Virus record (IMG/VR): IMGVR_UViG_3300021137_000001
Coordinates: 62,001-126,000 of that record
Reading direction: 5' to 3' (one strand)
Length of the DNA: 64,000 nucleotides
The position numbers and the translations under genes are program-made. Numbering within the stretch: the stretch's first letter is position 1; every line of letters starts with the position of its first letter. Below the pieces are notes generated by a model. It saw only the letters and a program-made list of their open reading frames with translations, was not told where the DNA came from and did not search any database. Shown in pieces: positions 3,397 to 62,896 of the stretch.

Positions 3397-4372
3397 TTAC
3401 ACTATTGCTCTTTGGAAATCAAGAAAAACTAAAAGTAGTTCTGCTGGATGGATTTCTGGAAATGCGCCTTGTTGCATACACAATGGCGAAAGCGCAGATA
3501 CACGCGGCCGAGGTGGATTGATATACGCCGACAATAAATTAACTTGGCATTGCTTTAACTGTTCCTACAAAGCATCATACATACCGGGTCGCCCATTAAC
3601 ATTTAAGTTTCGTAAACTACTTGGTTGGCTAGGTGCAAGTGATGGTGAAGTTAAGCGTTTAGTAATCGAAGCAATTCGCATTAAAGACTTAGTTGGCCCA
3701 ACAGAACATAAAGAAGAAGTTAAAGAAGAGATTGTAATTAAGGCACGTACATTGCCCGATAACATACAATCATTCACTGAACTAACTACCTTACACCCAG
3801 CCGCAGAATATTGTTACGATAGAAAAATCGACTTAACAAAGTATAACTTTTATGTAACTGAAAGTAAACAACACTCATTATATAAACGTGTAATCATTCC
3901 GTGCTACTGGAAGAACAATGTAATTGGCTATACAGCACGTGCTTTTACCGATGATGTTAAGCCAAAGTATCATAACAACTACGAATCAAATTTTGTGTTT
4001 AACACAGACCAACAGCAACGTGATTGGAAGTTTGTTATTGTATGCGAAGGCCCATTTGACGCAATGGCAATAGATGGTGTTGCAGTATTAGGTAATGACA
4101 TTAGTGAAATACAAGCGGATATTATAGATAGCTTGGGTCGAGAAGTTATTGTTGTTGCTGATACTGATGTTAGTGGTGCTAAAACAATAGATGCGGCAAT
4201 TAAGTATGGCTGGAGTGTAAGTTTCCCGATCTGGCAAGAAGATGCTGACTGTAAAGATATCAGCGCAGCAGTAGTCAAGTACGGCAAACTGTTTGTGCTT
4301 AAAAGCATTATTGATGCTAAAGAAACGAGCAAATTAAAAATAGAATTACTACGAAAAAGAATGTATAATTAA
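3377..4372 (+). CDS. DNA primase (T4 gp61-like; Zn finger + TOPRIM)
   Basis: CC...HCFNC zinc motif, CEGPFDAM, DTD and KD TOPRIM motifs; upstream of helicase. Confidence 0.9.
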   Translation: MINQISDYTIALWKSRKTKSSSAGWISGNAPCCIHNGESADTRGRGGLIYADNKLTWHCFNCSYKASYIPGRPLTFKFRKLLGWLGASDGEVKRLVIEAIRIKDLVGPTEHKEEVKEEIVIKARTLPDNIQSFTELTTLHPAAEYCYDRKIDLTKYNFYVTESKQHSLYKRVIIPCYWKNNVIGYTARAFTDDVKPKYHNNYESNFVFNTDQQQRDWKFVIVCEGPFDAMAIDGVAVLGNDISEIQADIIDSLGREVIVVADTDVSGAKTIDAAIKYGWSVSFPIWQEDADCKDISAAVVKYGKLFVLKSIIDAKETSKLKIELLRKRMYN

Positions 4373-7132: not shown

Positions 7133-7186
7133 TTGACATAGTCCTTTATGTTAGGGCAGTTGGATATTGACGTATCGCGAACTGCA
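7133..7186 (+). ncRNA. Two-hairpin structured motif, copy 1 (antisense to the endonuclease leader)
   Basis: TGACATA/TATGTTA hairpin followed by GCAGTTG-GATA..TATC-GCG-AACTGC; homologous to 7500-7552. Confidence 0.55.
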
Positions 7187-7237
7187 TAATTTTATTTATC
7201 AATAAATACACTAACAGTGATACATTAAGGACTAATC

Positions 7238-7495
7238 TTGCAAAAGCGTACTCGTGGCATACTTCAGGAACTCGACGAACTCCTTCAGCATAAGGATAAG
7301 GCAAACCTCATTGAGAGCAGAGCCAATAACATCATTAATGGTGCTATCAACCTTATTAATCACATACGTGAAAACTATGATGCAGAACAAGCTGGTGAAT
7401 TAGAACGACGTCTGCTTAATGCAATTAAAGGACAAGACCCTGCAAAATTTGCACGTGGCATACGGAAACTAAAAGATGATTTGGACGATAAATAA
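7238..7495 (+). CDS. Conserved phage hypothetical protein
   Basis: TTG start with AAGGA SD after ATAAATA promoter. Confidence 0.7.
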   Translation: MQKRTRGILQELDELLQHKDKANLIESRANNIINGAINLINHIRENYDAEQAGELERRLLNAIKGQDPAKFARGIRKLKDDLDDK

Positions 7496-7499
7496 TAGT

Positions 7500-7552
7500 G
7501 TAGTTCGCGGAATTGACGTTCCCAACTACTCTAACGTCTTGGAGGACATCAG
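7500..7552 (-). ncRNA. Two-hairpin structured motif, copy 2 (antisense to the endonuclease leader)
   Basis: Minus strand CTGATGTC/GACGTTAG hairpin plus GTAGTTG-GGAA..TTCC-GCG-AACTAC; compensatory changes versus copy 1. Confidence 0.55.
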
Positions 7553-52962: not shown

Positions 52963-54018
52963 ATGAACAAGATATTATTCGTACTCAAACGTAAAGACAA
53001 CTTTAACGCAGTTGTTGACTCGCACGTCGGGGTGTCGACTGGACTTTATAACTCTGCAAGTTTTATGAACAACATGCTTAACGATAGCGGAGTTGAAAGC
53101 AAGATGGTTGTTGTTCCAGATAACAACGCCATCGATAGAGAAGTAACAGCATATCGCCCAACACATGTAATCATCGAAGCACTTTGGGTAGTGCCAGAAA
53201 AGTTTATTATTCTAAGCAAACTCCACCCGACAGTAACATGGATTATTAGACTACATAGTGAAATGCCATTCTTAGCAGGTGAAGGTATGGCAATGGATTG
53301 GATTGGCGAATACGCAAGTTTTAAAAATATTGTTATTGCCGCCAACGCACCACGTATGTTAAGTGAAGTACGTTTCTTCTTGCAATGTAAGAATGGTTGG
53401 ACAGACGAGAAAACAAACAGCAAAGTAATTTATTTTCCTAATTATTATCCAACAGAGTTTGTACAAAAACCTTATATGGCCGCCGACAAAGAATTTATTG
53501 ACATTGGCTGCTTTGGTGCAGTCCGTCCGTTAAAGAATCATATGCTACAAGCATTTGCTTCACTTAAATTTGCAAATAAGATAGGTAAGAAATTACGCTT
53601 TCATATTAACTCTGGCAGATTAGAAATGAAAGGCGAACCAGTGTTAAACAACTTACGTGGACTGTTTCAACACTTAGCAGAAAAAGGTCATGTAGTTATC
53701 AGTCATGGTTGGACACATAGAGATGACTTCTTATTGCTATGTGCGCAGATGGATATTGGTATGCAAGTTAGTTTCTCTGAAACATTTAACATAGTTGGAG
53801 CTGACTTTATTAGTCAAGGTGTTCCGCTATTGGGAAGTAGTGAGATTCCGTGGTCGAGTAATACATTTAATAGTGACCCAACAAGTAGTGATGATATATT
53901 TCAGAAGTTAATGCTAACACATAACAATCCTGAGAAGAATATTATGCAACATCAGGGATTATTAACTAAGTATGTAAGTGAAACACAAGGTATATGGCAA
54001 GACTATTTTAAAGGGTAA
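52963..54018 (+). CDS. Glycosyltransferase-like protein (GT-B)
   Basis: GAVRPLKN, SETFNIVGAD. Confidence 0.65.
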   Translation: MNKILFVLKRKDNFNAVVDSHVGVSTGLYNSASFMNNMLNDSGVESKMVVVPDNNAIDREVTAYRPTHVIIEALWVVPEKFIILSKLHPTVTWIIRLHSEMPFLAGEGMAMDWIGEYASFKNIVIAANAPRMLSEVRFFLQCKNGWTDEKTNSKVIYFPNYYPTEFVQKPYMAADKEFIDIGCFGAVRPLKNHMLQAFASLKFANKIGKKLRFHINSGRLEMKGEPVLNNLRGLFQHLAEKGHVVISHGWTHRDDFLLLCAQMDIGMQVSFSETFNIVGADFISQGVPLLGSSEIPWSSNTFNSDPTSSDDIFQKLMLTHNNPEKNIMQHQGLLTKYVSETQGIWQDYFKG

Positions 54019-54022
54019 CAAA

Positions 54023-54241
54023 ATGAGCGTACATCACAAGAAACATCATGTAAAGATACACAAATGGATACACGGGATATTAGAAGTAGTACATCACAAT
54101 TTTGAATCATTGGAAGAAGCATTAGGATTTGCTGATGAACATTCTGCTAACAAAGAACATTCCGGACATCAAGTTAAAGTGTACAACGAAGATAACGAAT
54201 TAGTACATACTACTAACTGCTATCACGATACTTACGCATAA
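54023..54241 (+). CDS. His-rich small protein
   Basis: 72 aa, His-rich. Confidence 0.55.
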   Translation: MSVHHKKHHVKIHKWIHGILEVVHHNFESLEEALGFADEHSANKEHSGHQVKVYNEDNELVHTTNCYHDTYA

Positions 54242-54356
54242 ATTAGATGTCTTTAATGGTTTTACGTATGTTAAATGGTGGTTTTCGGTGCTACTATAGT
54301 TATAAGTACTAGTAACAACACAACGTTGTTTTAGACTTTTATCTAGGAGAATTATT

Positions 54357-54428
54357 ATGTGGACTACACCAGCAGTTACTGAAATGAGATTTGGTATGGA
54401 AATTTGTATGTATGTGATGAACAAATAA
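54357..54428 (+). CDS. pqqA: PQQ precursor peptide PqqA (MWTTPAVTEMRFGMEICMYVMNK), not in the ORF track
   Basis: W-x-x-P...R-F-G-x-E-x-x-x-Y pattern; AGGAG SD; own terminator. Confidence 0.88.
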   Translation: MWTTPAVTEMRFGMEICMYVMNK

Positions 54429-54446
54429 TTATTGTTCTAAGTATAG

Positions 54447-54470
54447 AAAAGACACTCCGGTGTCTTTTTT
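54447..54470 (+). terminator. Intrinsic terminator after pqqA
   Basis: AAAAGACAC-TCCG-GTGTCTTTTTT. Confidence 0.85.
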
Positions 54471-54546
54471 AATGGCTAAATAATCATTGACAGTAGAACA
54501 ATTTAGTGTTATAATAGTACTTTAAATAATAACTTAGGTACATATT

Positions 54547-54810
54547 ATGTCAAAAATAGCTTCAGTTGAGCAATACAATATCGATAACTGCGACGCAGTA
54601 TTTGATGGTAATCGATTCCAATTAATTTTAGCCGCAGGCGTTCGAGCGCATGAGATTGCAACAGCTCGTGTGACTGCATCACGTAATGCTGGCGCGACCG
54701 GAGTTCAAGTAAGGCATGATAATCTTGCTGTAGTTGCGGCACTACTTGAAGTTGACACTGGCAAGTTTGGTAAAGAGTATTTAAACAAAGTAGGCAAGAC
54801 AGGTAAGTAA
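54547..54810 (+). CDS. rpoZ: RNA polymerase omega subunit-like protein
   Basis: NRFQLILAAGVRAHEI...VVAALLEVDTG. Confidence 0.7.
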   Translation: MSKIASVEQYNIDNCDAVFDGNRFQLILAAGVRAHEIATARVTASRNAGATGVQVRHDNLAVVAALLEVDTGKFGKEYLNKVGKTGK

Positions 54811-54860
54811 CAATTTTATCCGGTTAAGGCATAAATACTCTACTAGGGGTGCTTTAACCA

Positions 54861-55280
54861 ATGACTAAAAAAGATAAGATTTATAAATGTTTAAATTGTG
54901 ATGCTATAATTCCGTTTAAAGGATATACATATACACACAAATACTGTAATAATAAATGTCAAAGTGAGTTAAGAGCAAAAGATGCGCTCGATAAACACAA
55001 AGTGGCATTTTTTGAAGGAAGTTGTAAAAGTAGGCCGAGAATTAGGCAGATACTTGCAGAAATTCGCGGATATAAATGTGAATGCTGTGGATTGTCGGAG
55101 TGGCAAGGTAATTCGATTGTGTTGCAAGTGGATCATATTAATGGTGATCCATATAATGACAATCCGGATAACTTGAGACTTATTTGTCCTAATTGTCATA
55201 GCCAAACCGATACATTTGCTGGAGCCAATAGAGGTAACGGTAGATGGAGTAAAGAAGGACTTGCAAGGTATTACAAGTAA
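54861..55280 (+). mobile_element. HNH endonuclease upstream of tRNAs
   Basis: CECC, LQVDHING, NLRLICPNCH. Confidence 0.88.
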
Positions 55281-55293
55281 TTTAATTTTAATT

Positions 55294-55369
55294 GGGTCGA
55301 TAACTCACTCGGCGAGAGTACTGTGCTCATAACGCAGAAGGCAGGGATCATAACCCTGGCGACCCACCA
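55294..55369 (+). tRNA. tRNA-Met/Ile2 (CAT) with atypical T-loop
   Basis: Cloverleaf, loop CTCATAA, CCA; T-loop ATCATAA. Confidence 0.75.
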
Positions 55370-55374
55370 ACAAA

Positions 55375-55452
55375 GCGTCCGTAGCTCATCTGGACTAGAG
55401 CATGGGATTTCTACTCCCAGGGTAGCTGGTTCGAATCCAGCCGGGCGCACCA
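55375..55452 (+). tRNA. tRNA-Arg (TCT)
   Basis: TGGGA-TTTCTAC-TCCCA, GGTTCGAATCC, CCA. Confidence 0.92.
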
Positions 55453-55473
55453 CTTTTTATATAAGGAAACACA

Positions 55474-55665
55474 ATGAGAACAAAGTCAGAATTTGATATT
55501 GCAATGGAAGAATTTTTAGCCAACGGTGGCGAAGTAAAACAAATAGCACGTGGCGTACAAAGTGAAACAGCAACAACAAACTTCTGGGGCGCACCAAAGA
55601 AAAAAGCCGCAGTAGAAGCAGTAAATGAGTTAGGCGCAACAGGTATTGACGTAATAGAAGAATAA
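55474..55665 (+). CDS. Small hypothetical protein
   Basis: AAGGA SD; EEFLANGGEVKQI motif. Confidence 0.65.
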   Translation: MRTKSEFDIAMEEFLANGGEVKQIARGVQSETATTNFWGAPKKKAAVEAVNELGATGIDVIEE

Positions 55666-55722
55666 TAATATCAGTTCAAAAATAAAATATAAATATATTA
55701 GTAATAATGGAGGTAACTCGAC

Positions 55723-56370
55723 TTGCACAATCCTGTAGAAAAACCAACTTGGTTATATAAACCTATCGATGATATCCCTGAATTGAATAAAATTCAAAAG
55801 GAATGTTTTCGAATCTATTCGGCTGTAAAGAAAGATATATGCAAAGATGTTGGCTGGGCCATTGCTGGAATAGAATTAGATATAATGAAAAAACTTGCAC
55901 CAAATTATATTAATTTTTTAAAAAAATTAGGGTTATACGAGATTTATGCCGGTACAGCATTTTCTGCTAGTATAGGGATACAAAAATATCCTTGTCCTGT
56001 ACACGTTGATTGTAAAGACTGGCGCCAATTACCATTTTCACTTAATATACCAGTTGTTGGATGTGAGGATAGTTATACTGTTTTTTATGATGTTGATGAA
56101 TCATCCGATCCTGCAAACGCATTACCAGATACATGGGATAATAATTATATGAAAATGAATAAAATTGAAGGAGTGGTCGGATATTCCGAAAAAACAGCAA
56201 AAGAAATTGGCAGAATGCCTGCTACCCAACCTGCATTTGTAAACATTGGTATTCCTCACCGCCCTGTGACAAATCATACTAATCTAAGATTAGTTATGTT
56301 ATCGAGATTTACACCTGACATATTTGATTATGTAAATAATGACATATTTAAAACTAAATTATCAGAATAA
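55723..56370 (+). CDS. Putative 2OG-Fe(II)/cupin-like protein
   Basis: HVD...SLNIP...H pattern. Confidence 0.5.
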   Translation: MHNPVEKPTWLYKPIDDIPELNKIQKECFRIYSAVKKDICKDVGWAIAGIELDIMKKLAPNYINFLKKLGLYEIYAGTAFSASIGIQKYPCPVHVDCKDWRQLPFSLNIPVVGCEDSYTVFYDVDESSDPANALPDTWDNNYMKMNKIEGVVGYSEKTAKEIGRMPATQPAFVNIGIPHRPVTNHTNLRLVMLSRFTPDIFDYVNNDIFKTKLSE

Positions 56371-56411
56371 TACCAGTTCAAAAATAAATGATAAATAATT
56401 AGATAAAGTGC

Positions 56412-56440
56412 TTGACAAGAGTATAAATAGAATATATAAT
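56412..56440 (+). promoter_or_regulatory. Promoter of the tRNA array (sigma70 with nested late box)
   Basis: TTGACA-N17-TATAAT with TATAAATA inside the spacer. Confidence 0.85.
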
Positions 56441-56474
56441 AGTTGTATAAGTTAATAAGGAAGTGAGAAAACAA

Positions 56475-56600
56475 ATGTTCAAATCGTTACATCAGTTTAA
56501 GATATCAACACTCGTGCAGTTATGCGGCGTGTCTTCTTATTGGTCAGCGATTGAGATGAATACGAGTGATCGCGCACCGAATAGAAAGGGTTTAAGTTAA
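56475..56600 (+). CDS. Putative attenuator leader peptide (41 aa, all 20 amino acids)
   Basis: MFKSLHQFKISTLVQLCGVSSYWSAIEMNTSDRAPNRKGLS*; last codons form the antiterminator 5' arm. Confidence 0.65.
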   Translation: MFKSLHQFKISTLVQLCGVSSYWSAIEMNTSDRAPNRKGLS

Positions 56601-56661
56601 CGTTTATTATTATATATGAATTTTTACTTAAACCTTAGAATTAAAAACTCTAAGGTTTTTT
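56587..56661 (+). terminator. Antiterminator/terminator switch ahead of the tRNA array
   Basis: 56587-56597 pairs with 56626-56636; alternative terminator CCTTAGA/TCTAAGG plus T6. Confidence 0.75.
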
Positions 56662-56775
56662 GCTTTTAGCAGTAAGTGTTTTGGAAACGAGGTCCATAAC
56701 TAAACACTATAAAGATTGTAAGTTGAACGGGCGGAACTAGGGATGAAGCACCTTGTGTGGTGTGAAAAATCTAGC

Positions 56776-56856
56776 ATAATAAAGTACATTAATCGGCAAC
56801 TAGGTCCCACGCAATGTGGATTATGTCAGAGGCGAGTAATTAGTGTGCTTTATTAT
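56776..56856 (+). ncRNA. Long-stem small RNA unit 1
   Basis: 18-bp closing stem with two G-U pairs. Confidence 0.5.
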
Positions 56857-56900
56857 ACGCATTCACATGAGTGCGGTACACAATTTGTAGTGCATTTTGT

Positions 56901-56975
56901 CAGGGTATAGCTCAGCCTGGCCAGAGTCCTCGGTTTGGAACCGAGTTGTCGTAAGTTCGAATCTTACTACCCTGA
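56901..56975 (+). tRNA. tRNA-Pro (TGG), no encoded CCA
   Basis: CTCGG-TTTGGAA-CCGAG; acceptor stem extended by a flanking inverted repeat. Confidence 0.88.
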
Positions 56976-57080
56976 CAAAATGCATTACTTAAAAAGAGGT
57001 TAACACATACGGTAATTGGTAGTATAATAGCTACTTGAAGTTAAGTAATACGCTCTTTAACAGTTTGGAAGTTTTACAAT

Positions 57081-57153
57081 ATCGCATTCATCTAGTGGCC
57101 TAAGATACTGCCCTTTCACGGCAGGTACACGGATTCGAATTCCGTATGCGATA
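57081..57153 (+). tRNA. tRNA-Glu (TTC), no encoded CCA
   Basis: CTGCC-CTTTCAC-GGCAG; ATCGCAT/ATGCGAT acceptor. Confidence 0.88.
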
Positions 57154-57182
57154 CACATAGTAAATTTTGTATAAATACAAGT

Positions 57183-57794
57183 ATGACATATTACTACTTG
57201 TATCAAATCACTAATTTAGTGAATGCAAAAATTTACGTTGGAGTACATAAAACGAAATCATTAGATGACGGATATATGGGCTCTGGAAAAATTATTCAAT
57301 GTGCAATTAAAAAACACGGAATTGATAATTTTAAAAAAGACATACTTGAGACTTTTGACACATCAGAAGCTATGTATGCACGTGAGAAAGAAATAGTAAC
57401 AGATCAGTTTCTGTTACGCGAAGATACCTATAACTTACGTAGAGGCGGAACTGGCGGATTTGATTATATAAACAAGCAACCATGGGTGCATACTACAAAC
57501 AGGATAATAGGAGATATAAAGAAAAGTAAAACATTAAAAGGTAGACGCCCTTCTGAAAATACGTTAATAGCAGTAAGGTTAATGCATCAAGACGGAAGAG
57601 TAAAGTATGATACGTTTACTGGTAAACAGCATACCATCGAAACTAAACAAAAAATGTCAATTGCGAAAAAAGGAAAAGGATGCAATCAGCATAACAGTCA
57701 ATTCGGTACTATATGGATAACGGATGGTATAAGTAACAAAAAAATAAAGAAAGATGTTACTATTCCAGAAGGATGGAATAGAGGTAGAAGTTAA
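57183..57794 (+). mobile_element. GIY-YIG (SegB-like) homing endonuclease in the tRNA array
   Basis: YLYQITN...IYVGVH, YMGSG, YNLRRGG. Confidence 0.88.
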
Positions 57795-57798
57795 GACC

Positions 57799-57904
57799 AT
57801 ATTAAAACATATTTGACCAAGTCGGTGTTCCTTGATGCTAGGATTAGAGCGGACAGCAGTCCGCGAGATGTAGTTGCGATATTACAGCAAGTGTGTTTTA
57901 ATAT
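57799..57904 (+). ncRNA. Long-stem small RNA unit 2
   Basis: 17-bp closing stem with G-U pairs; internal GCGGAC/GTCCGC hairpin. Confidence 0.5.
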
Positions 57905-57915
57905 AGTAAGTCTAT

Positions 57916-57989
57916 TGGCTCATGGTGTAGTGGTAGCACAACAGGTTTTGATCCTGTTAGTTGTAGTTCGATTCTACATGGGCCTGCCA
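57916..57989 (+). tRNA. tRNA-Gln (TTG)
   Basis: ACAGG-TTTTGAT-CCTGT, CCA. Confidence 0.9.
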
Positions 57990-58058
57990 AGTTTTAATGG
58001 AGTGGAAATACCATACTATCAGTCCGTTATGTATAAATACATATATAGGAGAACTGAT

Positions 58059-58457
58059 ATGTTTAAGAACAGTAAGAAACAAGGTGACGCTGGATTAGGG
58101 CAAGCAATAGCATATTTTACAATGAAAGGATATGATGTTGCGTTGCCACTAACAGATAGCGCAGACTGGGATATGATTGTTGAGATAGATGGTGAACTTA
58201 AAAGAGTCCAAGTTAAAACATCTAAACAACTATCTAAAACGGGTATAATGATGTTTAATGCTAATGTAAATGGCGGCAACATGTCATTTAATAAAAAACC
58301 TAAACTTATACCAGAACAACAATGGGATTTATTGTTCTTACATCACTTAGTGACAAATAAGCAAGCATTGATTCCTAAAGAAGCACTAACTACAAAAGGT
58401 CAAGTGAACTTAGGTAGTAGTCAATGTAAGTATAAAGATTTTATGATTAATGGATGA
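58059..58457 (+). mobile_element. PD-(D/E)XK endonuclease (I-Ssp6803I-like family)
   Basis: KQGD..., WDMIVE..RVQVKT; AGGAG SD; stop overlaps tRNA-Tyr. Confidence 0.75.
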
Positions 58458-58537
58458 GCGGCGCAGTTGGAGAGGCGCGGGAGACTGTAAATCTCTTTTC
58501 CCTGAATGAGTAGGTTCGAATCTTACCTCATCCACCA
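58452..58537 (+). tRNA. tRNA-Tyr (GTA)
   Basis: GGAGA-CTGTAAA-TCTCT, long variable arm, CCA. Confidence 0.9.
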
Positions 58538-58542
58538 ATTTA

Positions 58543-58619
58543 GTTGTGTCGTCGGTTCGAAGCCAACCTGTAATCAAGCGAAATAGCAGTTACAGTAGTT
58601 TACTTGGTAAAACAACAAC
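58543..58619 (+). ncRNA. Circularly permuted, anticodon-less tRNA-like element
   Basis: T-arm and 3' acceptor strand precede the 5' acceptor strand and D-arm; ends pair GTTGT/ACAAC. Confidence 0.65.
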
Positions 58620-58651
58620 AATTTTTGTAGTAAATTTAATAGGAGCAACAC

Positions 58652-58672
58652 ATGAAGCGAGTTAAACTTTAG
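58652..58672 (+). CDS. Mini-ORF MKRVKL* upstream of tRNA-Lys
   Basis: AGGAG SD 6 nt before ATG; AAG and AAA codons. Confidence 0.65.
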   Translation: MKRVKL

Positions 58673-58743
58673 TGTCGTCTTTAATCCCATTGTACTGTAT
58701 TAAAGGTAACGGCACGTTAAATCTTTAATACAGTACAATGGGA
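58672..58743 (+). promoter_or_regulatory. Two-state RNA switch overlapping the tRNA-Lys 5' end
   Basis: Perfect 21-bp inverted repeat 58685-58705/58723-58743 versus alternative 58672-58685/58699-58715. Confidence 0.7.
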
Positions 58744-58815
58744 GTATGGTGAAATTGGTTATCACATGGGACTTTTAATCCTTCGTTCAGAGTTCAAGTC
58801 TCTGTGCTCCTACCA
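58740..58815 (+). tRNA. tRNA-Lys (TTT)
   Basis: Loop CTTTTAA; weak anticodon stem TGGGA/TCCTT; CCA. Confidence 0.85.
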
Positions 58816-58922
58816 TAAGAAAGTACATTGCTAACGCCTCTGAGAAGGGTTCCGGTAGTCCTGTATCAATTAATAGCTAAGTCAGCAGATGGGTTCGCTG
58901 AATGTAGTGTACTTCCTTATGG
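58813..58922 (+). ncRNA. Long-stem small RNA unit 3
   Basis: About 18-bp closing stem beginning at the tRNA-Lys CCA. Confidence 0.5.
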
Positions 58923-58929
58923 TTTCAAT

Positions 58930-59004
58930 GTTGTTTATAGTGTAGCGATAACACCCCATCCTGTGAAGATGGTATCACGAGTTTGAACCTCGTTAGACAA
59001 CCCA
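58930..59004 (+). tRNA. tRNA-His (GTG)
   Basis: G-1:C73, CCATC-CTGTGAA-GATGG, CCA. Confidence 0.88.
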
Positions 59005-59062
59005 ACTTTTAATATGGCTTCCGTCCGTAGAATACTGCTTGCAGTCGGCCCGGAAGTTCTTT

Positions 59063-59137
59063 GGCCGATTCGTATAATGATCATTACACGGGATTGTCTA
59101 TCCTGCTATGAGAGTTTGATTCTCTCATCGGTCGCCA
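59063..59137 (+). tRNA. tRNA-Asp (GTC)
   Basis: CGGGA-TTGTCTA-TCCTG, G73, CCA. Confidence 0.88.
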
Positions 59138-59200
59138 AGTTTTAAAATAATAGTTGACAGTGTGTATTAGAACTGTTACACTATGTAGATAGTAACAAAT

Positions 59201-59329
59201 AAGTATTTGGAAGAAAGTCGCAACTTAATGTATTCGTGGGAAGGAGAGTGCGACATCCCGTCCGAAAGAGTAGGTGATGCTACGGTGTAACTCCGTCATT
59301 TGAATTACTGTATGATTCTGCACATACTT
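59201..59329 (+). ncRNA. Candidate structured RNA after an internal promoter
   Basis: AAGTAT/ATACTT closure, GTCGCA/TGCGAC, possible GGGA/TCCC pseudoknot, ACGG/CCGT hairpin. Confidence 0.4.
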
Positions 59330-59360
59330 AACAGGCATGTATTTGCCGCAGAACTTATAT

Positions 59361-59435
59361 CGCGGAGTGGGGAAGTGGCAACCCGGAAGGCTCATAACCT
59401 TTAGATCGGCAGTTCGAATCTGTCCTCCGCAACCA
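59361..59435 (+). tRNA. Initiator tRNA-fMet (CAT)
   Basis: C1xA72 mismatch, CTCATAA loop, CCA. Confidence 0.88.
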
Positions 59436-59440
59436 GTAAT

Positions 59441-59515
59441 GCCGCCTTAGCTCATTTGGTAGAGCAACGCACTTGTAATGCGTAGGCGCCCAGTTCGAAC
59501 CCGGGAGGCGGACCA
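59441..59515 (+). tRNA. tRNA-Thr (TGT), acceptor 3' strand one nt short
   Basis: ACGCA-CTTGTAA-TGCGT; ends AGGCGGACCA. Confidence 0.8.
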
Positions 59516-59523
59516 ATTTTAAT

Positions 59524-59597
59524 GCGGCTATGATGTAATGGTAACCTAAAACTTTGCCAAAGTTTAATCGCGAGTTCGATTCTCGCTAGCCGCTCCA
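59524..59597 (+). tRNA. tRNA-Gly (GCC)
   Basis: AAACT-TTGCCAA-AGTTT, U73, CCA. Confidence 0.9.
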
Positions 59598-59661
59598 AAT
59601 TTTGCTTGACAAAATGTCAAAACGAATGTATAATACACTTAATTAAAAAAAGGAGGCTGAC

Positions 59662-60054
59662 ATGTACTACGATGAAGTAAAGTTTGAAGAATTAAAAGGT
59701 AAGGTATTAGTTAGTGCAACAGTCTCTGACTATAAAGATGAAATGAAGTTTGTAACAACAGACGGCGAAATATATACTTTGTATCACGCACAAGATTGTT
59801 GTGAATCAGTGGAAATTGAATCTATCGTTGGTGACTTAGCTGATTTAGTTGGCGAAGAAATCTTAATGGCAGAAGAAGCACAAAACTTATTTGACTTGAT
59901 TAAATCTGCAGGAGTCGAAGAAGAAGATGAATACGGTTCACACACTTGGACATTTTACAAACTAGCAACTCGCAAAGGGTACGTTGACATCAGATGGTAT
60001 GGTTCGAGCAACGGGTACTATTCAGAGGAAGTTTCTTTTAAAAGAGAGAAATAA
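59662..60054 (+). CDS. Conserved phage hypothetical protein
   Basis: HAQDCCESV, WTFYKL, SNGYYSE; sigma70 promoter and AGGAGG SD. Confidence 0.75.
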   Translation: MYYDEVKFEELKGKVLVSATVSDYKDEMKFVTTDGEIYTLYHAQDCCESVEIESIVGDLADLVGEEILMAEEAQNLFDLIKSAGVEEEDEYGSHTWTFYKLATRKGYVDIRWYGSSNGYYSEEVSFKREK

Positions 60055-60055
60055 T

Positions 60056-60217
60056 ATGACTTCTAAAAAACCACAGTGGGTTAAAGATAAAGAAGCACTG
60101 CAAACTGCGCCCCCAGAGACAATTATTATAATTGGCAAAATGGGCGCAGATGGTGTTATTAACGGTCGGCTACCGAGCGGTGAAATCTATCATCGCAATA
60201 AAAGGCAACATAGATAA
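60056..60217 (+). CDS. Hypothetical protein
   Basis: Short ORF in operon. Confidence 0.5.
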   Translation: MTSKKPQWVKDKEALQTAPPETIIIIGKMGADGVINGRLPSGEIYHRNKRQHR

Positions 60218-60588
60218 TGGACTTTACAATTGACCCAGAGTACTTAACAAGTGTAACTATTCGCGATGAGTGGAACACGTATACACGTAATGGTCGTGTA
60301 CCTACAGCAGAAGAACTTATTTTAATTATTCAAGGCAAGGGTGAGTGCTCGACTACTAGTTCAGCCGACCACCCAGAGTTTGCTAAGTTACGTGAGGAAC
60401 TAGGTTTGCTACGTTATATTCATATACAGCGTAGTTGGTGGAATGGCGATAGTGTATTAAAACCATTCACACTTAACGGAAGAAAGTTTAAGGTAGGAGC
60501 ACAGTTTAGCAGTGGTAGTGCAATGGGTACACACCTTATTGTACGTGCTAAACACCCAGAATATTATAAGGATGAATATGATGATTAA
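60217..60588 (+). CDS. Hypothetical protein
   Basis: Coupled ORF. Confidence 0.65.
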   Translation: MDFTIDPEYLTSVTIRDEWNTYTRNGRVPTAEELILIIQGKGECSTTSSADHPEFAKLREELGLLRYIHIQRSWWNGDSVLKPFTLNGRKFKVGAQFSSGSAMGTHLIVRAKHPEYYKDEYDD

Positions 60589-61066
60589 ACCATGGATTGA
60601 AAACGTTAGTATGAAAGACGTACAAGTAGGCGAGCACTTTGATGCTGGCACTAACTCTATGCTTATTCAAATCGTTGACCCTATTACTCTTTTTCCAACA
60701 CCAAAGTTTGCATTTAAAGAAGTGCATCAGTTTAAGTTTTTAGATGCAGAAGATACTGACGTTGCAGAGTACGGCGAAGAGCCATTGATTAGCGATCAGC
60801 AAGCAGAAGCAATTTTACAGTTGCTACAACGTGCGCTAGCCGACAATATGAACATTGTTGTACATTGTCACGCTGGTTTATGTCGTAGTGGTGCAGTAGT
60901 AGAAATTGGTGTTATGATGGGCTTTAGAGATACTGAAAAGTTTCGCAGTCCTAACCTACGTGTTAAACACAAACTAATGAAATTGCTTGGGCTAACACAT
61001 AACCCAGATGAGCAACACAACTGGCGTGATGATTATAGACATCACTTAACTAAAAGCAATATGTAA
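60578..61066 (+). CDS. Protein-tyrosine/dual-specificity phosphatase-like protein
   Basis: VHCHAGLCRS (CX5R). Confidence 0.85.
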   Translation: MMIKPWIENVSMKDVQVGEHFDAGTNSMLIQIVDPITLFPTPKFAFKEVHQFKFLDAEDTDVAEYGEEPLISDQQAEAILQLLQRALADNMNIVVHCHAGLCRSGAVVEIGVMMGFRDTEKFRSPNLRVKHKLMKLLGLTHNPDEQHNWRDDYRHHLTKSNM

Positions 61067-61077
61067 AGGAGTAGTAC

Positions 61078-61272
61078 ATGATTAAGTTATCCCCAACGGG
61101 TAAGATATCCAAAAATGCTAACAAAGAACTTTGTCTTAACACCGAGTTCAAAGTTAGCATTGATGTACGTAATGTAACGTACGATAACATTGATGAAAAG
61201 ATTGCTGAGCTTATTGCAGAGGCACACAAAGTCAAACAAGTACTCGAACAAAACATAGTAACATCAAATTAA
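61078..61272 (+). CDS. Hypothetical protein
   Basis: AAGGAG SD. Confidence 0.6.
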   Translation: MIKLSPTGKISKNANKELCLNTEFKVSIDVRNVTYDNIDEKIAELIAEAHKVKQVLEQNIVTSN

Positions 61273-61280
61273 AAGAATAC

Positions 61281-61356
61281 GCAACCTTAGCTCATCTGGT
61301 AGAGCACCTGCTTGAAGCGCAGGGTGTGTTTGGTTCAAGTCCAAGAGGTTGCACCA
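61281..61356 (+). tRNA. tRNA-Phe (GAA)
   Basis: CCTGC-TTGAAGC-GCAGG, CCA. Confidence 0.9.
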
Positions 61357-61383
61357 AACAGTAAATACATAAAAGGGCAGTAT

Positions 61384-61878
61384 ATGAAAAAACTGAATTT
61401 CGATGAAGTAAGTGAATTTATCAATGCACAAAGTGATGAAACTAAAATCTACATTGGCGGTGATAGCACACGCTTTCGTAAGAATGGTGTATGGCATGCA
61501 GAATACACTATGGCAATTGTAGTACACATTGATGGCAAACATGGTTGTAAAATCTTTGGCGAAAGCTCAACTGAAATTGATTACGACCAAAAACGTAATC
61601 GCCCAAGTATGCGTCTAATGAATGAAGTGTACAAAATTAGTGAACTATACTTAAAACTACACGAAGTATTAGAAGGGCGTGATGTTGCTGTACACTTAGA
61701 TATTAACCCAAACGAAGCACACGGTTCAAGCTGTGTTGTGTCACAAGCAATAGGCTACATTCGTGGTACTTGCAACGTTATCCCAATGGTTAAACCTCAT
61801 GCGTGGGCTGCATCGTATTGTGCGGACCGCTTGAAGGAAGTTATGGCAATGCAGGAAAATCAACGCAAAATAGCCTAA
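61384..61878 (+). CDS. RNase H-like YkuK/DUF458 protein
   Basis: IYIGGDS, RLMNEV, VHLDIN, KP..AAS..AD. Confidence 0.78.
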   Translation: MKKLNFDEVSEFINAQSDETKIYIGGDSTRFRKNGVWHAEYTMAIVVHIDGKHGCKIFGESSTEIDYDQKRNRPSMRLMNEVYKISELYLKLHEVLEGRDVAVHLDINPNEAHGSSCVVSQAIGYIRGTCNVIPMVKPHAWAASYCADRLKEVMAMQENQRKIA

Positions 61879-61993
61879 AGTGCTGTGTTATTTGTTGATA
61901 AAGTTCTTGACTTTGCACCACTGATTATGCTATAATACATTTTTATATAGTTGTTATTAAACATTTTATTTCTCTTAAAGGATACTTTTATTT

Positions 61994-62896
61994 ATGCTTA
62001 GACTCTGTATTGCATCAGATATACATTTGGAGTTTGGTAGCATTGAATTAACCAATACCTCTAATGCTGACGTGCTAATCTTAGCTGGCGATATATGTGT
62101 TGCTCGTGACATTGAATTAGCTGGCAAGAATATGTACAGCAATCGTAAACGTGCTGATCGTTATATTGAATTCTTTCAGCAGGTAAGTCGTGCGTTCCCT
62201 AAAGTTATTTACGTAGTGGGCAATCACGAGCACTATGATGGTGATGTTAAGTACACAAACGGCATTCTTAAACGTGCATTAGCAGAGTTTGAAAACATTC
62301 ATATACTTGAAAAAGAAACATTGGAACTTGGTGACGTTACATTTATCGGTGCTACTATGTGGACTGATATGAATGGGGGCGATCCACTTACACTAGCGGG
62401 CATTAAAAATGCAATGAATGACTTTAGGTGCATTGATAACAGCAACAACATGGTTCAACGTAAAGTCCCATTATACGATGAAGGTGGTGAATTTAATAGT
62501 GTACGTAATGTTATTGGGTTTAAGTTTAAAGAAGAAGCAAGCAAGTTTACACCAACTGATGCTATGGATGATCACAAGCAGGCAATAGATTATATCAATC
62601 ATGTTGTTACTAATGATACAACTAAGAAATATGTAGTTGTGGGACATCACGCACCAAGTATGCAAAGCTGTGCTGATAGATTTCGTGGCGACAGGATTAT
62701 GAACGGCGGGTTCTATACAGAGCTCGGTGACTTTATGGCATACCGCCCTCAGATTGCCTGCTGGATTCACGGTCACACTCACGATCCATACGATTATGTC
62801 ATTGGGGAAACACGTGTTGTATGTAATCCACGTGGTTATATTGGATACGAAGCACAAGCAGTTGATTTTGAGTTAAAATACATAGATGTTGCATAA
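61994..62896 (+). CDS. Calcineurin-like metallophosphoesterase
   Basis: SDIHLE, AGD, GNHE, HHAP, HGHTH, NPRGY. Confidence 0.9.
   Translation: MLRLCIASDIHLEFGSIELTNTSNADVLILAGDICVARDIELAGKNMYSNRKRADRYIEFFQQVSRAFPKVIYVVGNHEHYDGDVKYTNGILKRALAEFENIHILEKETLELGDVTFIGATMWTDMNGGDPLTLAGIKNAMNDFRCIDNSNNMVQRKVPLYDEGGEFNSVRNVIGFKFKEEASKFTPTDAMDDHKQAIDYINHVVTNDTTKKYVVVGHHAPSMQSCADRFRGDRIMNGGFYTELGDFMAYRPQIACWIHGHTHDPYDYVIGETRVVCNPRGYIGYEAQAVDFELKYIDVA

Follow-up and report, generated by a model that had tools for sequence, protein, structure and literature searches.

In the 64,000-nt stretch of phage DNA analysed here (positions 62,001 to 126,000 of IMG/VR record IMGVR_UViG_3300021137_000001; hereafter the window), a consensus sigma-70-type promoter is followed by a short open reading frame (ORF) and by two alternative, predicted RNA hairpins, the second of which ends in a U tract. 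The features of this region are as follows:

56412..56440 (+): sigma-70-type promoter (TTGACA, 17 nt, TATAAT), a 12/12 consensus match preceded by an A+T-rich stretch; inferred transcript start near 56447
56458..56464 (+): Shine-Dalgarno-like AAGGAAG, with its AGGA core ending 12 nt before the ATG
56475..56600 (+): leader ORF of 41 codons plus TAA, containing all 20 amino acids
56478..56576 (+): predicted sensing zone (codons 2-34), in which a stalled ribosome would leave the antiterminator free
56535..56556 (+): 22-nt core TCTTATTGGTCAGCGATTGAGA (codons S Y W S A I E), able to form a local hairpin or to pair with 56568-56584
56577..56579 (+): invariant Pro codon (CCG), marking the boundary between the predicted read-through and termination zones
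56587..56636 (+): predicted antiterminator hairpin P2, whose 5' arm comprises the last four codons, the stop codon and 7 nt beyond, and whose 3' arm ends in ACCTT, part of the 5' arm of the terminator
56631..56661 (+): predicted intrinsic terminator P3 (AACCTTAGA / TCTAAGGTT, 9-nt loop) with a U6 tract at 56656-56661
56673..56884 (+): conserved structured RNA of unknown kind, the first product downstream of the terminator
56901..56976 (+): tRNA-Pro (UGG), the first tRNA gene downstream of the element
57000..57028 (+): next promoter (TTAACA, 17 nt, TATAAT), an 11/12 match preceded by the same AAAGAGGT motif that precedes the leader promoters in homologues

These data confirm the observation made in an earlier note based on the sequence alone. 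The promoter, the 41-codon ORF with 20 different amino acids and 31 different codons, the 11-bp pairing of 56587-56597 with 56626-56636 (one of the pairs being G.U) and the CCTTAGA/TCTAAGG hairpin (56633-39 and 56649-55) with its T6 tract are all present. These features exceed what would be expected by chance. All 20 amino acids occur in only 0.24% of the 41-residue windows of the phage's own proteins (0.64% for independent draws), and the presence of 31 or more distinct codons places the ORF in the top 1.4% of such windows. Its codon adaptation is in the lowest 1.5% of windows from the phage's own genes, and the codons that the note had considered uncommon (TCG, CTC, GCG, ACG, CCG and CGC) each make up 4-17% of their synonymous family. 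The antiterminator hairpin (-15.4 kcal/mol) has a z-score of -4.5 and the terminator hairpin (-10.2 kcal/mol) a z-score of -3.9, with 0 of 200 shuffles folding as well as either of them.

Several details nevertheless require correction. The antiterminator is larger than the 11-bp helix described in the note, because it also includes the stop codon and the spacer, and it overlaps only 4 nt (56633-36) of the 7-nt core 5' arm of the terminator, or 6 of 9 nt if the A-A/U-U extension is counted. The predicted terminator of the window is weak (-9 to -10 kcal/mol, 2 G-C pairs, 9-nt loop) and was not called by a scan for consensus terminators. Moreover, the element does not lie directly before the tRNA array, as the note had stated, but inside it: tRNA-Met and tRNA-Arg are located upstream (55294-55452), whereas the 239 nt between the U tract and tRNA-Pro are filled by the structured RNA. 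The promoter at 57000 probably limits how much of the array in the window depends on the element.

Conservation of the leader and its alternative hairpins

We identified about 55 related loci with 31 distinct leader peptides in metagenomic and IMG/VR contigs of uncultured phages, forming a family of giant freshwater phages, whereas no relative was found in the GTDB genome set. DNA searches of the region and of 14 kb around it against GenBank phages returned only tRNA-level matches. A search anchored on the upstream 215-aa gene led to unrelated phage contexts, because this gene is a mobile insertion in the window. A degenerate DNA pattern for the core additionally hit three unrelated contigs, which were discarded after inspection, and the other hits obtained with the peptide among representative sequences were long repetitive proteins rather than relatives. 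The peptide matches no PHROG, Pfam or NCBIfam model, including Tna_leader and other leader families at E <= 10, and a search of 54000-62000 against Rfam at E <= 1 returned only tRNAs and weak chance hits, with no match for the leader, the downstream RNA or a T-box.

In every homologue with upstream sequence, TTGACA is invariant and a -10-like hexamer is present. A conserved TAAAGGA/TAAGGAA motif is aligned in all homologues, although it ends 12-13 nt from the conserved ATG, further than usual, and its role in initiation is putative; a comparison with the spacing in other genes was uninformative, because mechanically assigned ORF starts are unreliable. The reading frame is open in all 31 variants over 41-50 codons despite about 45% peptide divergence, every indel within the frame is a multiple of three, and dN/dS outside the core is roughly 0.24-2.2, as expected for a regulatory ORF rather than a folded protein. 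Wherever enough downstream sequence is available, tRNA-Pro(UGG) is the first tRNA gene and is followed by a tRNA array. For the RNA that precedes it, RNAalifold predicts 39 pairs on the basis of 14 loci, 14 of them with compensatory changes, including an 18-bp long-range helix. The analysis also exposes a new, covariation-supported structured RNA of about 200 nt that would be co-transcribed with the tRNAs.

Both alternative hairpins are kept at every locus and show compensatory changes. For P2, 91% of cells are paired across 21 sequences, 4-5 pairs show changes on both sides (4 in this set), one pair displays a G-C, G.U, A-U series and 0 of 500 shuffles match, whereas slid registers give only 29-60%. 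For P3, 93% of cells are paired, 5 of 9 pairs show changes on both sides and, again, 0 of 500 shuffles match. A hairpin followed by U5-6 is present in all homologues, which have stronger stems (-12 to -16 kcal/mol) than the window. Four different ORF 3' ends, including a 48-50-codon type whose stop lies 21 nt further on, all keep a 5' arm inside the ORF that pairs with the 5' arm of the terminator.

To determine how a ribosome would affect this choice, we folded the RNA with a masked ribosome footprint. In the window, the terminator probability is 0.19 without a ribosome, 0.17 with a ribosome stalled at codon 15 and 0.98 with a ribosome at the stop codon. It is 0.07-0.70 across the predicted sensing zone and, in five homologues of four 3'-end types, rises to 0.8-1.0 at the invariant Pro codon or within the next two codons. 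However, in three homologous loci (L009, L020 and L021), the terminator is favoured at equilibrium even without a ribosome, so that regulation would have to be kinetic. Similarly, in the 48-50-codon type, a ribosome resting at the stop codon no longer masks the 5' arm (terminator probability 0.10), so that timing rather than occupancy of the stop must decide.

Of the 31 peptides, 25 contain all 20 amino acids and six lack only Cys. The first 35-37 codons hold 19-20 amino acids in all 19 variants examined for this property (20 through Pro35 in the window), against a null of 0.7% for 19 or more and 0.04% for 20. When lost, His (twice), Val (once) and Cys (several times) move to other positions. 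A simulation on the same tree with the same number of changes per column expects 4.7-7.5 complete tips, against 17 observed (P = 0.0003-0.002), although the homologues are not independent lineages, recombination is evident and the tree was built from the same region.

Contrary to the expectation in the note that the peptide sequence would be free to vary, the core SYWSAIE-x(4,5)-NDRxP is invariant. At the nucleotide level, the 22-nt segment is unchanged in 18 of the 19 distinct sequences aligned (the remaining one, L042, has two synonymous changes), and the Pro codon is CCG in 18 of 19 and CCA in one. The segment occurs once in the window, with none expected by chance. Two alternative hairpins involve this core. 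The one within the ORF proposed by RNAalifold has a z-score of only -1.4 and competes with a local hairpin, whose flanking pairs covary in 1-2 sequences. They are adjacent to P2 but do not overlap it, so no anti-antiterminator is evident. The core may act as a pause hairpin, an arrest peptide or a binding site.

A proposed translation-dependent switch and its alternatives

We conclude, with reasonable though not full confidence, that the element is a ribosome-mediated (leader-peptide) transcription attenuator placed in front of a phage stable-RNA operon. In this view, a strong host-type promoter starts a transcript in which 126 nt encode the leader, followed by RNA that can fold in two mutually exclusive ways: into a long A/U-rich hairpin (P2) or into an intrinsic terminator (P3) whose 5' arm is sequestered by P2. 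If a ribosome translates past the invariant Pro codon and reaches the stop while RNA polymerase is making the terminator, it would cover the 5' arm of P2, so that P3 forms and transcription ends at 56661. If it is delayed anywhere in the first ~34 codons, P2 would form first and polymerase would read on into the structured RNA, tRNA-Pro and, in many relatives, further tightly packed tRNA genes. Because the ~35 codons concerned contain 19-20 different amino acids, many encoded by codons that are rare in the phage, the delay could come from a shortage of almost any charged tRNA, and the element would act as a feedback switch that raises phage tRNA output when the decoding capacity of the infected cell drops. 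Our analysis establishes the sequence features, their conservation, the covariation of both helices, the retention of amino-acid completeness and the predicted fold switch. By contrast, transcription from the promoter, translation of the leader, termination at P3, the direction of regulation and the physiological trigger, including any link to anticodon nucleases or starvation, are inferred from sequence alone.

The interpretation offered in the note, a general sensor of the tRNA pool that deploys phage tRNAs on demand, is supported only in part. The checks it had proposed mostly came out in its favour, since homologues keep the ORF, its length class, its amino-acid diversity and the pairing between its 3' end and the 5' side of the terminator, and masking of the stop codon switches the predicted fold. 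However, codons after the invariant Pro lie where a stall should cause termination. As the only Cys codon is found there in many variants, at most 19 amino acids would be sensed in these cases. In addition, what would be gated is the structured RNA plus tRNA-Pro and whatever follows before the next promoter, rather than the whole array. The simple any-codon model also neither needs nor explains the invariant core.

It is tempting to speculate that the leader is a deliberately complete codon test strip, which holds one or two codons for each of 19-20 amino acids in the zone where a stall gives antitermination and thereby lets a giant phage measure the whole charged-tRNA pool of its host with a single RNA. 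The phage would then switch on its tRNA operon and the structured RNA only when any one decoding species becomes limiting, be it through its own codon demand, host tRNA degradation or tRNA-cleaving defence nucleases. This reading is possible but tentative, and we consider it slightly less likely than not. If correct, it would represent the first multivalent all-amino-acid attenuator and the first known regulated deployment of phage tRNAs; our literature searches found no description of such an element. Phage tRNA genes are currently debated as codon-usage supplements or as countermeasures to host tRNA degradation and tRNA-cleaving defences (PMC10264068, PMC11555353), and how their expression is controlled is essentially unknown. 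A conserved attenuator whose leader samples nearly every amino acid would show that some phages regulate tRNA supply by feedback from translation itself, extending classical attenuation from single-pathway sensing to the whole decoding pool. As the element is compact (about 250 nt) and uses a consensus sigma-70 promoter and an intrinsic terminator, it should be testable in laboratory E. coli or in a reconstituted system and could also serve as a general reporter of tRNA charging or translation stress.

Among the alternatives, the best-surviving one, although unlikely, is an attenuator of the same architecture that senses overall translation capacity or transcription-translation coupling (ribosome availability, host shut-off, translation inhibitors) rather than the charged-tRNA pool. 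The 19-20 amino acids would then be inherited from an ancestor and kept mainly because the core is conserved for other reasons. Indeed, the rare residues W, Y, E, D, R and P all lie in the core, so that part of the completeness could be a by-product of its conservation, Cys is dispensable, only a few relocations carry the completeness signal, and leader ORFs reporting general translation stress are known, for example toiL (PMC12121999). However, the phylogeny-aware simulation preserves per-column conservation and still supports retained completeness, the diversity is concentrated exactly in the predicted sensing zone, rare codons are enriched, and the regulated genes are tRNAs, which fits a tRNA-supply signal.

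It is very unlikely that the ORF is an ordinary small phage protein gene with its own promoter and terminator, whose 3' pairing is incidental or serves mRNA stability. Its invariant 7+5-residue core, the shared length class of its homologues, the abundance of small ORFs with consensus promoters in this region and the three homologues whose terminator forms at equilibrium regardless of the ribosome could be taken to support this view. Yet, outside the core the peptide evolves nearly neutrally, four unrelated C-terminal sequences all keep the alternative pairing, with compensatory changes inside the coding sequence, the core is conserved at synonymous sites too, no protein family matches, and the element always sits upstream of the same RNA genes.

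Similarly improbable is the notion that the core is a nascent-chain arrest sequence that stalls the ribosome at the invariant Pro in response to a specific ligand or condition, in the manner of TnaC or SecM, so that this programmed stall, not tRNA supply, sets the choice of hairpin. The core residues are invariant, the W-to-P spacing of 12-13 residues, with an acidic residue at W+4 and D at P-3, superficially recalls TnaC, the Pro codon sits exactly at the predicted switch point, and the two synonymous changes in L042 weaken the RNA hairpins but keep the peptide. However, the resemblance to TnaC, noticed by eye, has no statistical support, conservation of the core at the nucleotide level and its ability to form hairpins are enough to explain it, and a stall at or after Pro is predicted to favour termination, the same outcome as unhindered translation, so that it would add no regulation on this model; nor would it explain the amino-acid completeness. 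Finally, although long A/U-rich helices and the 18-bp helix in the downstream RNA resemble processing stalks and tRNA operons are heavily processed, a role of the hairpins as processing or stability signals (for example RNase III or RNase E sites) is the least likely, as P3 has the canonical form of an intrinsic terminator in every homologue (a G+C-rich stem base immediately followed by U5-6), P2 and P3 are mutually exclusive and both covary, and a conserved ORF ending inside P2 is not needed for processing.

Relationship to known leader-based regulators

T-box riboswitches likewise couple the expression of translation-supply genes to the charging state of tRNA by a choice between terminator and antiterminator. 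However, a T-box binds one specific uncharged tRNA directly and needs no translation, whereas here no T-box was matched by Rfam and a conserved ORF ends inside the antiterminator. The TnaC leader of the tryptophanase operon is short and has conserved Trp, acidic and Pro residues at similar spacing. It senses free tryptophan and acts by arrest at the stop codon, which blocks Rho, whereas the present element has no HMM match to it, carries a predicted intrinsic terminator and a covarying antiterminator, and is predicted to terminate upon a stall at Pro. Leader or upstream ORFs that sense general translation stress include toiL of E. coli topAI-yjhQ (PMC12121999). The bmrCD and erm leaders are antibiotic-responsive attenuators. 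In these systems, as proposed here, a short ORF whose translation can be slowed at many positions reports a broad class of translation problems to downstream gene expression. However, they respond to ribosome-targeting drugs, with toiL acting through translation and Rho-dependent termination, they control protein-coding genes, amino-acid completeness is not a known feature of them, and there is no homology. With toiL, only the concept is shared.

The closest parallels are the leader-peptide attenuators of amino-acid biosynthesis operons in enterobacteria (trp, his, leu, thr, pheA, ilvGMEDA and ilvBN). As in these systems, a short ORF, here inferred to be translated, lies after the promoter, a predicted intrinsic terminator lies before the regulated genes, a competing antiterminator would be masked by a ribosome that reaches the end of the leader, an upstream stall would give read-through, and a possible in-ORF hairpin sits where the pause hairpin would be. 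However, there is no sequence relationship to these leaders and no clear region-1/region-2 pairing that would give termination in the absence of translation. In addition, there is no run of codons for one or a few amino acids: the most frequent residue, Ser (7), is scattered, and 19-20 different amino acids occur mostly once or twice each, whereas the broadest known classical case, ilvGMEDA, senses three. Finally, the genes placed under control are stable RNAs of a phage, namely tRNAs and a structured RNA, rather than biosynthetic enzymes.

A promoter, leader ORF and hairpins inside a tRNA array

Inspection of positions 56200-57000, together with scans for promoters, ORFs, tRNA genes and RNA hairpins, confirmed each literal statement of the earlier note, so that the observation itself holds. 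The following elements, all on the plus strand, are relevant to the analysis:

56412-56440 (+), sigma-70 promoter matching the consensus at 12/12 positions
56475-56600 (+), ORF starting with ATG, with 41 sense codons, 20 different amino acids and 31 different codons
56535-56556 (+), 22-nt conserved core within the ORF (codons S Y W S A I E)
56587-56636 (+), predicted antiterminator hairpin (P2), containing the 11-bp complementarity (one pair of it G.U) between 56587-97 and 56626-36
up to 56661 (+), predicted terminator (P3), a hairpin of CCTTAGA with TCTAAGG followed by T6 ending at 56661
56673-56884 (+), conserved predicted structured RNA, followed by tRNA-Pro
57000 (+), promoter matching the consensus at 11/12 positions, downstream of tRNA-Pro

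To determine how unusual the leader is, we used 45 long ORFs of the window as a reference set. All 20 amino acids occur in 0.24% of the 41-residue windows and 31 or more distinct codons in 1.4%, while the codon adaptation of the leader falls into the lowest 1.5%. The codons that the note had singled out as apparently uncommon (TCG, CTC, GCG, ACG, CCG and CGC) each make up 4-17% of their synonymous family. The two hairpins fold far better than shuffled sequences, with z = -4.5 for P2 and z = -3.9 for P3. However, several details need to be corrected. The antiterminator, previously described as an 11-bp pairing with the last codons of the ORF, is a 50-nt hairpin that also contains the stop codon, and it overlaps only 4 nt of the core arm of the terminator, or 6 nt if the A-A/U-U extension is included. 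The terminator of the window is weak and was missed by the consensus scan. Moreover, the element is not located directly before the tRNA array, as the note had proposed, because two tRNA genes lie upstream of it, 239 nt separate the U tract from tRNA-Pro, and an additional promoter follows tRNA-Pro at 57000.

The window is part of a 329-kb uncultured phage contig from IMG/VR without a DNA relative among GenBank phages. Its NrdA is 55-59% identical to those of Xanthomonas, Ralstonia and Stenotrophomonas phages. The surroundings of the element contain further features:

54487, 56412, 57000, 59606 and 61907 (+), near-consensus sigma-70 promoters
54547-54810 and 55474-55665 (+), genes of small proteins next to the tRNA region
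54861-55280, 57183-57794 and 58035-58457 (+), three different nuclease genes (HNH, GIY-YIG homing endonuclease, PD-(D/E)XK)
55723-56370 (+), gene of a 215-aa protein without an assigned function
58520-58648 (+), weak YrlA (Y RNA-like) match just after tRNA-Tyr

The near-consensus promoters recur through the array, and in relatives most are preceded by a shared AAAGAGG motif immediately upstream of TTGACA, which is also seen before the promoter at 57000 in the window. The small proteins in the window and at positions 7142-7549 of the related contig L009 (see below) give sub-threshold matches to RNA polymerase omega/Rpb6 (23.3 bits against a cut-off of 26) and to the SutA RNA-polymerase-binding domain (28.8 against 29.3), and a relative has a weak ribosomal L12-like gene. 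Thus, the neighbourhood may be devoted to transcription and translation take-over. The nuclease genes are interspersed among the tRNA genes, suggesting that homing elements reshuffle the array. The YrlA match (25.9 bits, E = 0.037) is far below the gathering score and probably due to chance, although it sits in a stable-RNA cluster.

A family of related loci in uncultured phages

The 215-aa gene upstream of the leader proved to be a false anchor in the search for relatives. Its homologues, which are 68-78% identical, sit next to a clamp-loader-like AAA gene in otherwise unrelated phage contigs (L005-L008), and nothing else in those contigs matches the window. In relatives of this phage (L009 and an ENA contig), by contrast, the gene is absent and the SutA-like gene directly precedes the leader, identifying the 215-aa gene as a recent mobile insertion. 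An exhaustive search with the 41-residue peptide, on the other hand, found a 98% identical copy and a 55% identical 41-residue homologue on the 32-kb contig L009, which shows the same layout of promoter, ORF, hairpin plus U tract, conserved non-coding block, tRNA-Pro and further tRNAs. A search with a DNA pattern from the downstream block, followed by a peptide-profile scan of metagenomes and of IMG/VR, gave about 55 loci with 31 distinct leader peptides, whereas the GTDB genome set contained none. In every locus with enough downstream sequence, tRNA-Pro(UGG) and a tRNA array follow, often with the tRNAs only 5-10 nt apart, which leaves no room for separate promoters. The TTGACA promoter is invariant.

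The ORF behaves like a regulatory leader. Its frame is open in all variants (41-50 codons), and every indel within it is a multiple of three. Outside the conserved core, pairwise dN/dS is about 0.24-2.2, which indicates little constraint on the peptide itself, and no protein family matches it.

The 22 nucleotides of the core (56535-56556) and the codons N D R x P are almost invariant, even at synonymous sites. These sequences can form either a local hairpin or a longer hairpin between the two blocks. Flanking pairs of the local hairpin covary in one or two sequences, but the energy is not exceptional, and one homologue, L042, has two synonymous changes that weaken both hairpins. The core may be a pause hairpin analogous to the trp 1:2 structure, a nascent-chain signal or a binding site. 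A resemblance to TnaC that was seen by eye is not supported by the profile searches.

Immediately after the terminator lies an RNA of ~200 nt (window 56673-56884; L009 8341-8553) that is conserved in these two and 12 other loci. It has 39 predicted pairs, 14 of them with compensatory changes, and an 18-bp long-range helix that encloses a variable insert, but no Rfam match. In some lineages (L009 8205-8336; the loci L034 and L035 and several IMG/VR loci), a 43-residue ORF with a strong AAGGAG ribosome-binding site is inserted precisely between the terminator and this RNA, whereas it is absent in the window. In some homologues (L031 at ~3440-3530, also L024, L028, L037, L039, L040 and L042), an extra tRNA-like segment lies between the structured RNA and tRNA-Pro. 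It has a GGTTCGAGTCC T-arm, a long variable arm and possibly a UAA anticodon, but is not called by ARAGORN. Since the next promoter of the window only comes at 57000, the attenuator would control at least the structured RNA, predicted to be co-transcribed with the tRNAs, and tRNA-Pro, and add to the transcription of what follows. In several relatives, three or more tRNAs follow without gaps.

Alternative RNA structures and amino-acid completeness

Folding of the individual sequences showed that P2 is a long A/U-rich hairpin whose base, GGGG with CCC(U), sequesters most of the 5' arm of the terminator. Four different ORF 3' ends exist (..GLS, ..GDLS/N, ..GVRS and a longer ..REGWDGY), each of which keeps a 5' arm inside the ORF. 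In the long type, this arm, UAGGGUUC, lies 25-32 nt before the stop and pairs with GAACCCUA. An anchored count of our own and an automated count on a 21-sequence alignment agreed on the conservation of both helices. For P2, 91% of cells are paired, 4-5 pairs show changes on both sides and 0 of 500 shuffles reach the covariation score, with slid registers giving 29-60%. For P3, 93% of cells are paired, 5 of 9 pairs show changes on both sides and 0 of 500 shuffles match. At the pair next to the last codon, the series G-C, G.U, A-U is seen among close relatives.

To predict the effect of translation, we folded the whole leader transcript with a ribosome footprint masked, assumed to extend from 12 nt before to 15 nt after the first base of the P-site codon. 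For the window, the equilibrium probability of the terminator stem is 0.19 with no ribosome, 0.17 with a stall at codon 15 and 0.98 with the ribosome at the stop. A scan of every A-site position revealed a sharp step. The probability is mostly low (0.07-0.70 in the window, near zero in the homologues L040, L042 and L024) up to the codon before an invariant Pro (CCG), and it is about 0.8-1.0 from that codon, or one to two codons later, onward. However, in the homologues L009, L020 and L021 the terminator is favoured at equilibrium in all states, so that the antiterminator could act only co-transcriptionally, and in the long type a ribosome parked on the stop no longer masks the 5' arm (terminator probability 0.10). 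The step appears in five homologues representing four of the 3'-end types.

Of the 31 distinct peptides, 25 contain all 20 amino acids, and the other six lack only Cys. In all 19 variants examined for this purpose, the 35-37 codons up to and including the invariant Pro, which represent the predicted sensing zone, contain 19-20 different amino acids. In the phage's own proteins, 19 or more occur in 0.7% and 20 in 0.04% of 35-residue windows. Rare residues move rather than disappear, with Cys occupying six alignment columns, His being lost at its usual place in two lineages but present elsewhere in both, and the single Val behaving likewise in L009. W, Y, E, D, R and P lie in the invariant core, so part of the completeness is carried by its conservation, and in many variants the only Cys is in the tail, where a stall should terminate. 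A column shuffle gives a mean of 10.6 complete peptides out of 19, against 17 observed. A simulation on the family tree that keeps the number of changes per column, although based on a tree from the same short region in which recombinants exist, expects 4.7-7.5 complete tips (P = 0.0003-0.002).

Interpretation and relation to known systems

Collectively, the sequence features and their conservation are established by our analysis, whereas the regulatory function is inferred from sequence comparison and predicted folds alone. The best explanation is a ribosome-mediated attenuator of a phage tRNA and stable-RNA operon, with a leader built to contain nearly every amino acid. We consider an attenuator of this kind likely, whereas the stronger claim that completeness is the selected sensing principle remains tentative. 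The interpretation offered in the earlier note, a general sensor of the tRNA pool that deploys phage tRNAs on demand, is supported only in part. The element is small and should work in standard laboratory systems.

Recent work on phage tRNAs as countermeasures to tRNA-targeting defences provides the biological context (PMC10264068, PMC11555353), while full-text literature searches found no description of a leader of this type or of attenuation of phage tRNA genes. The architecture, consisting of an ORF, an antiterminator and a terminator, is that of classical leader-peptide attenuation, but the element lacks the defining run of regulatory codons and is predicted to regulate RNA genes. The idea of a leader ORF that reports broad translation stress has a precedent in toiL (PMC12121999), which, however, works differently and is unrelated.
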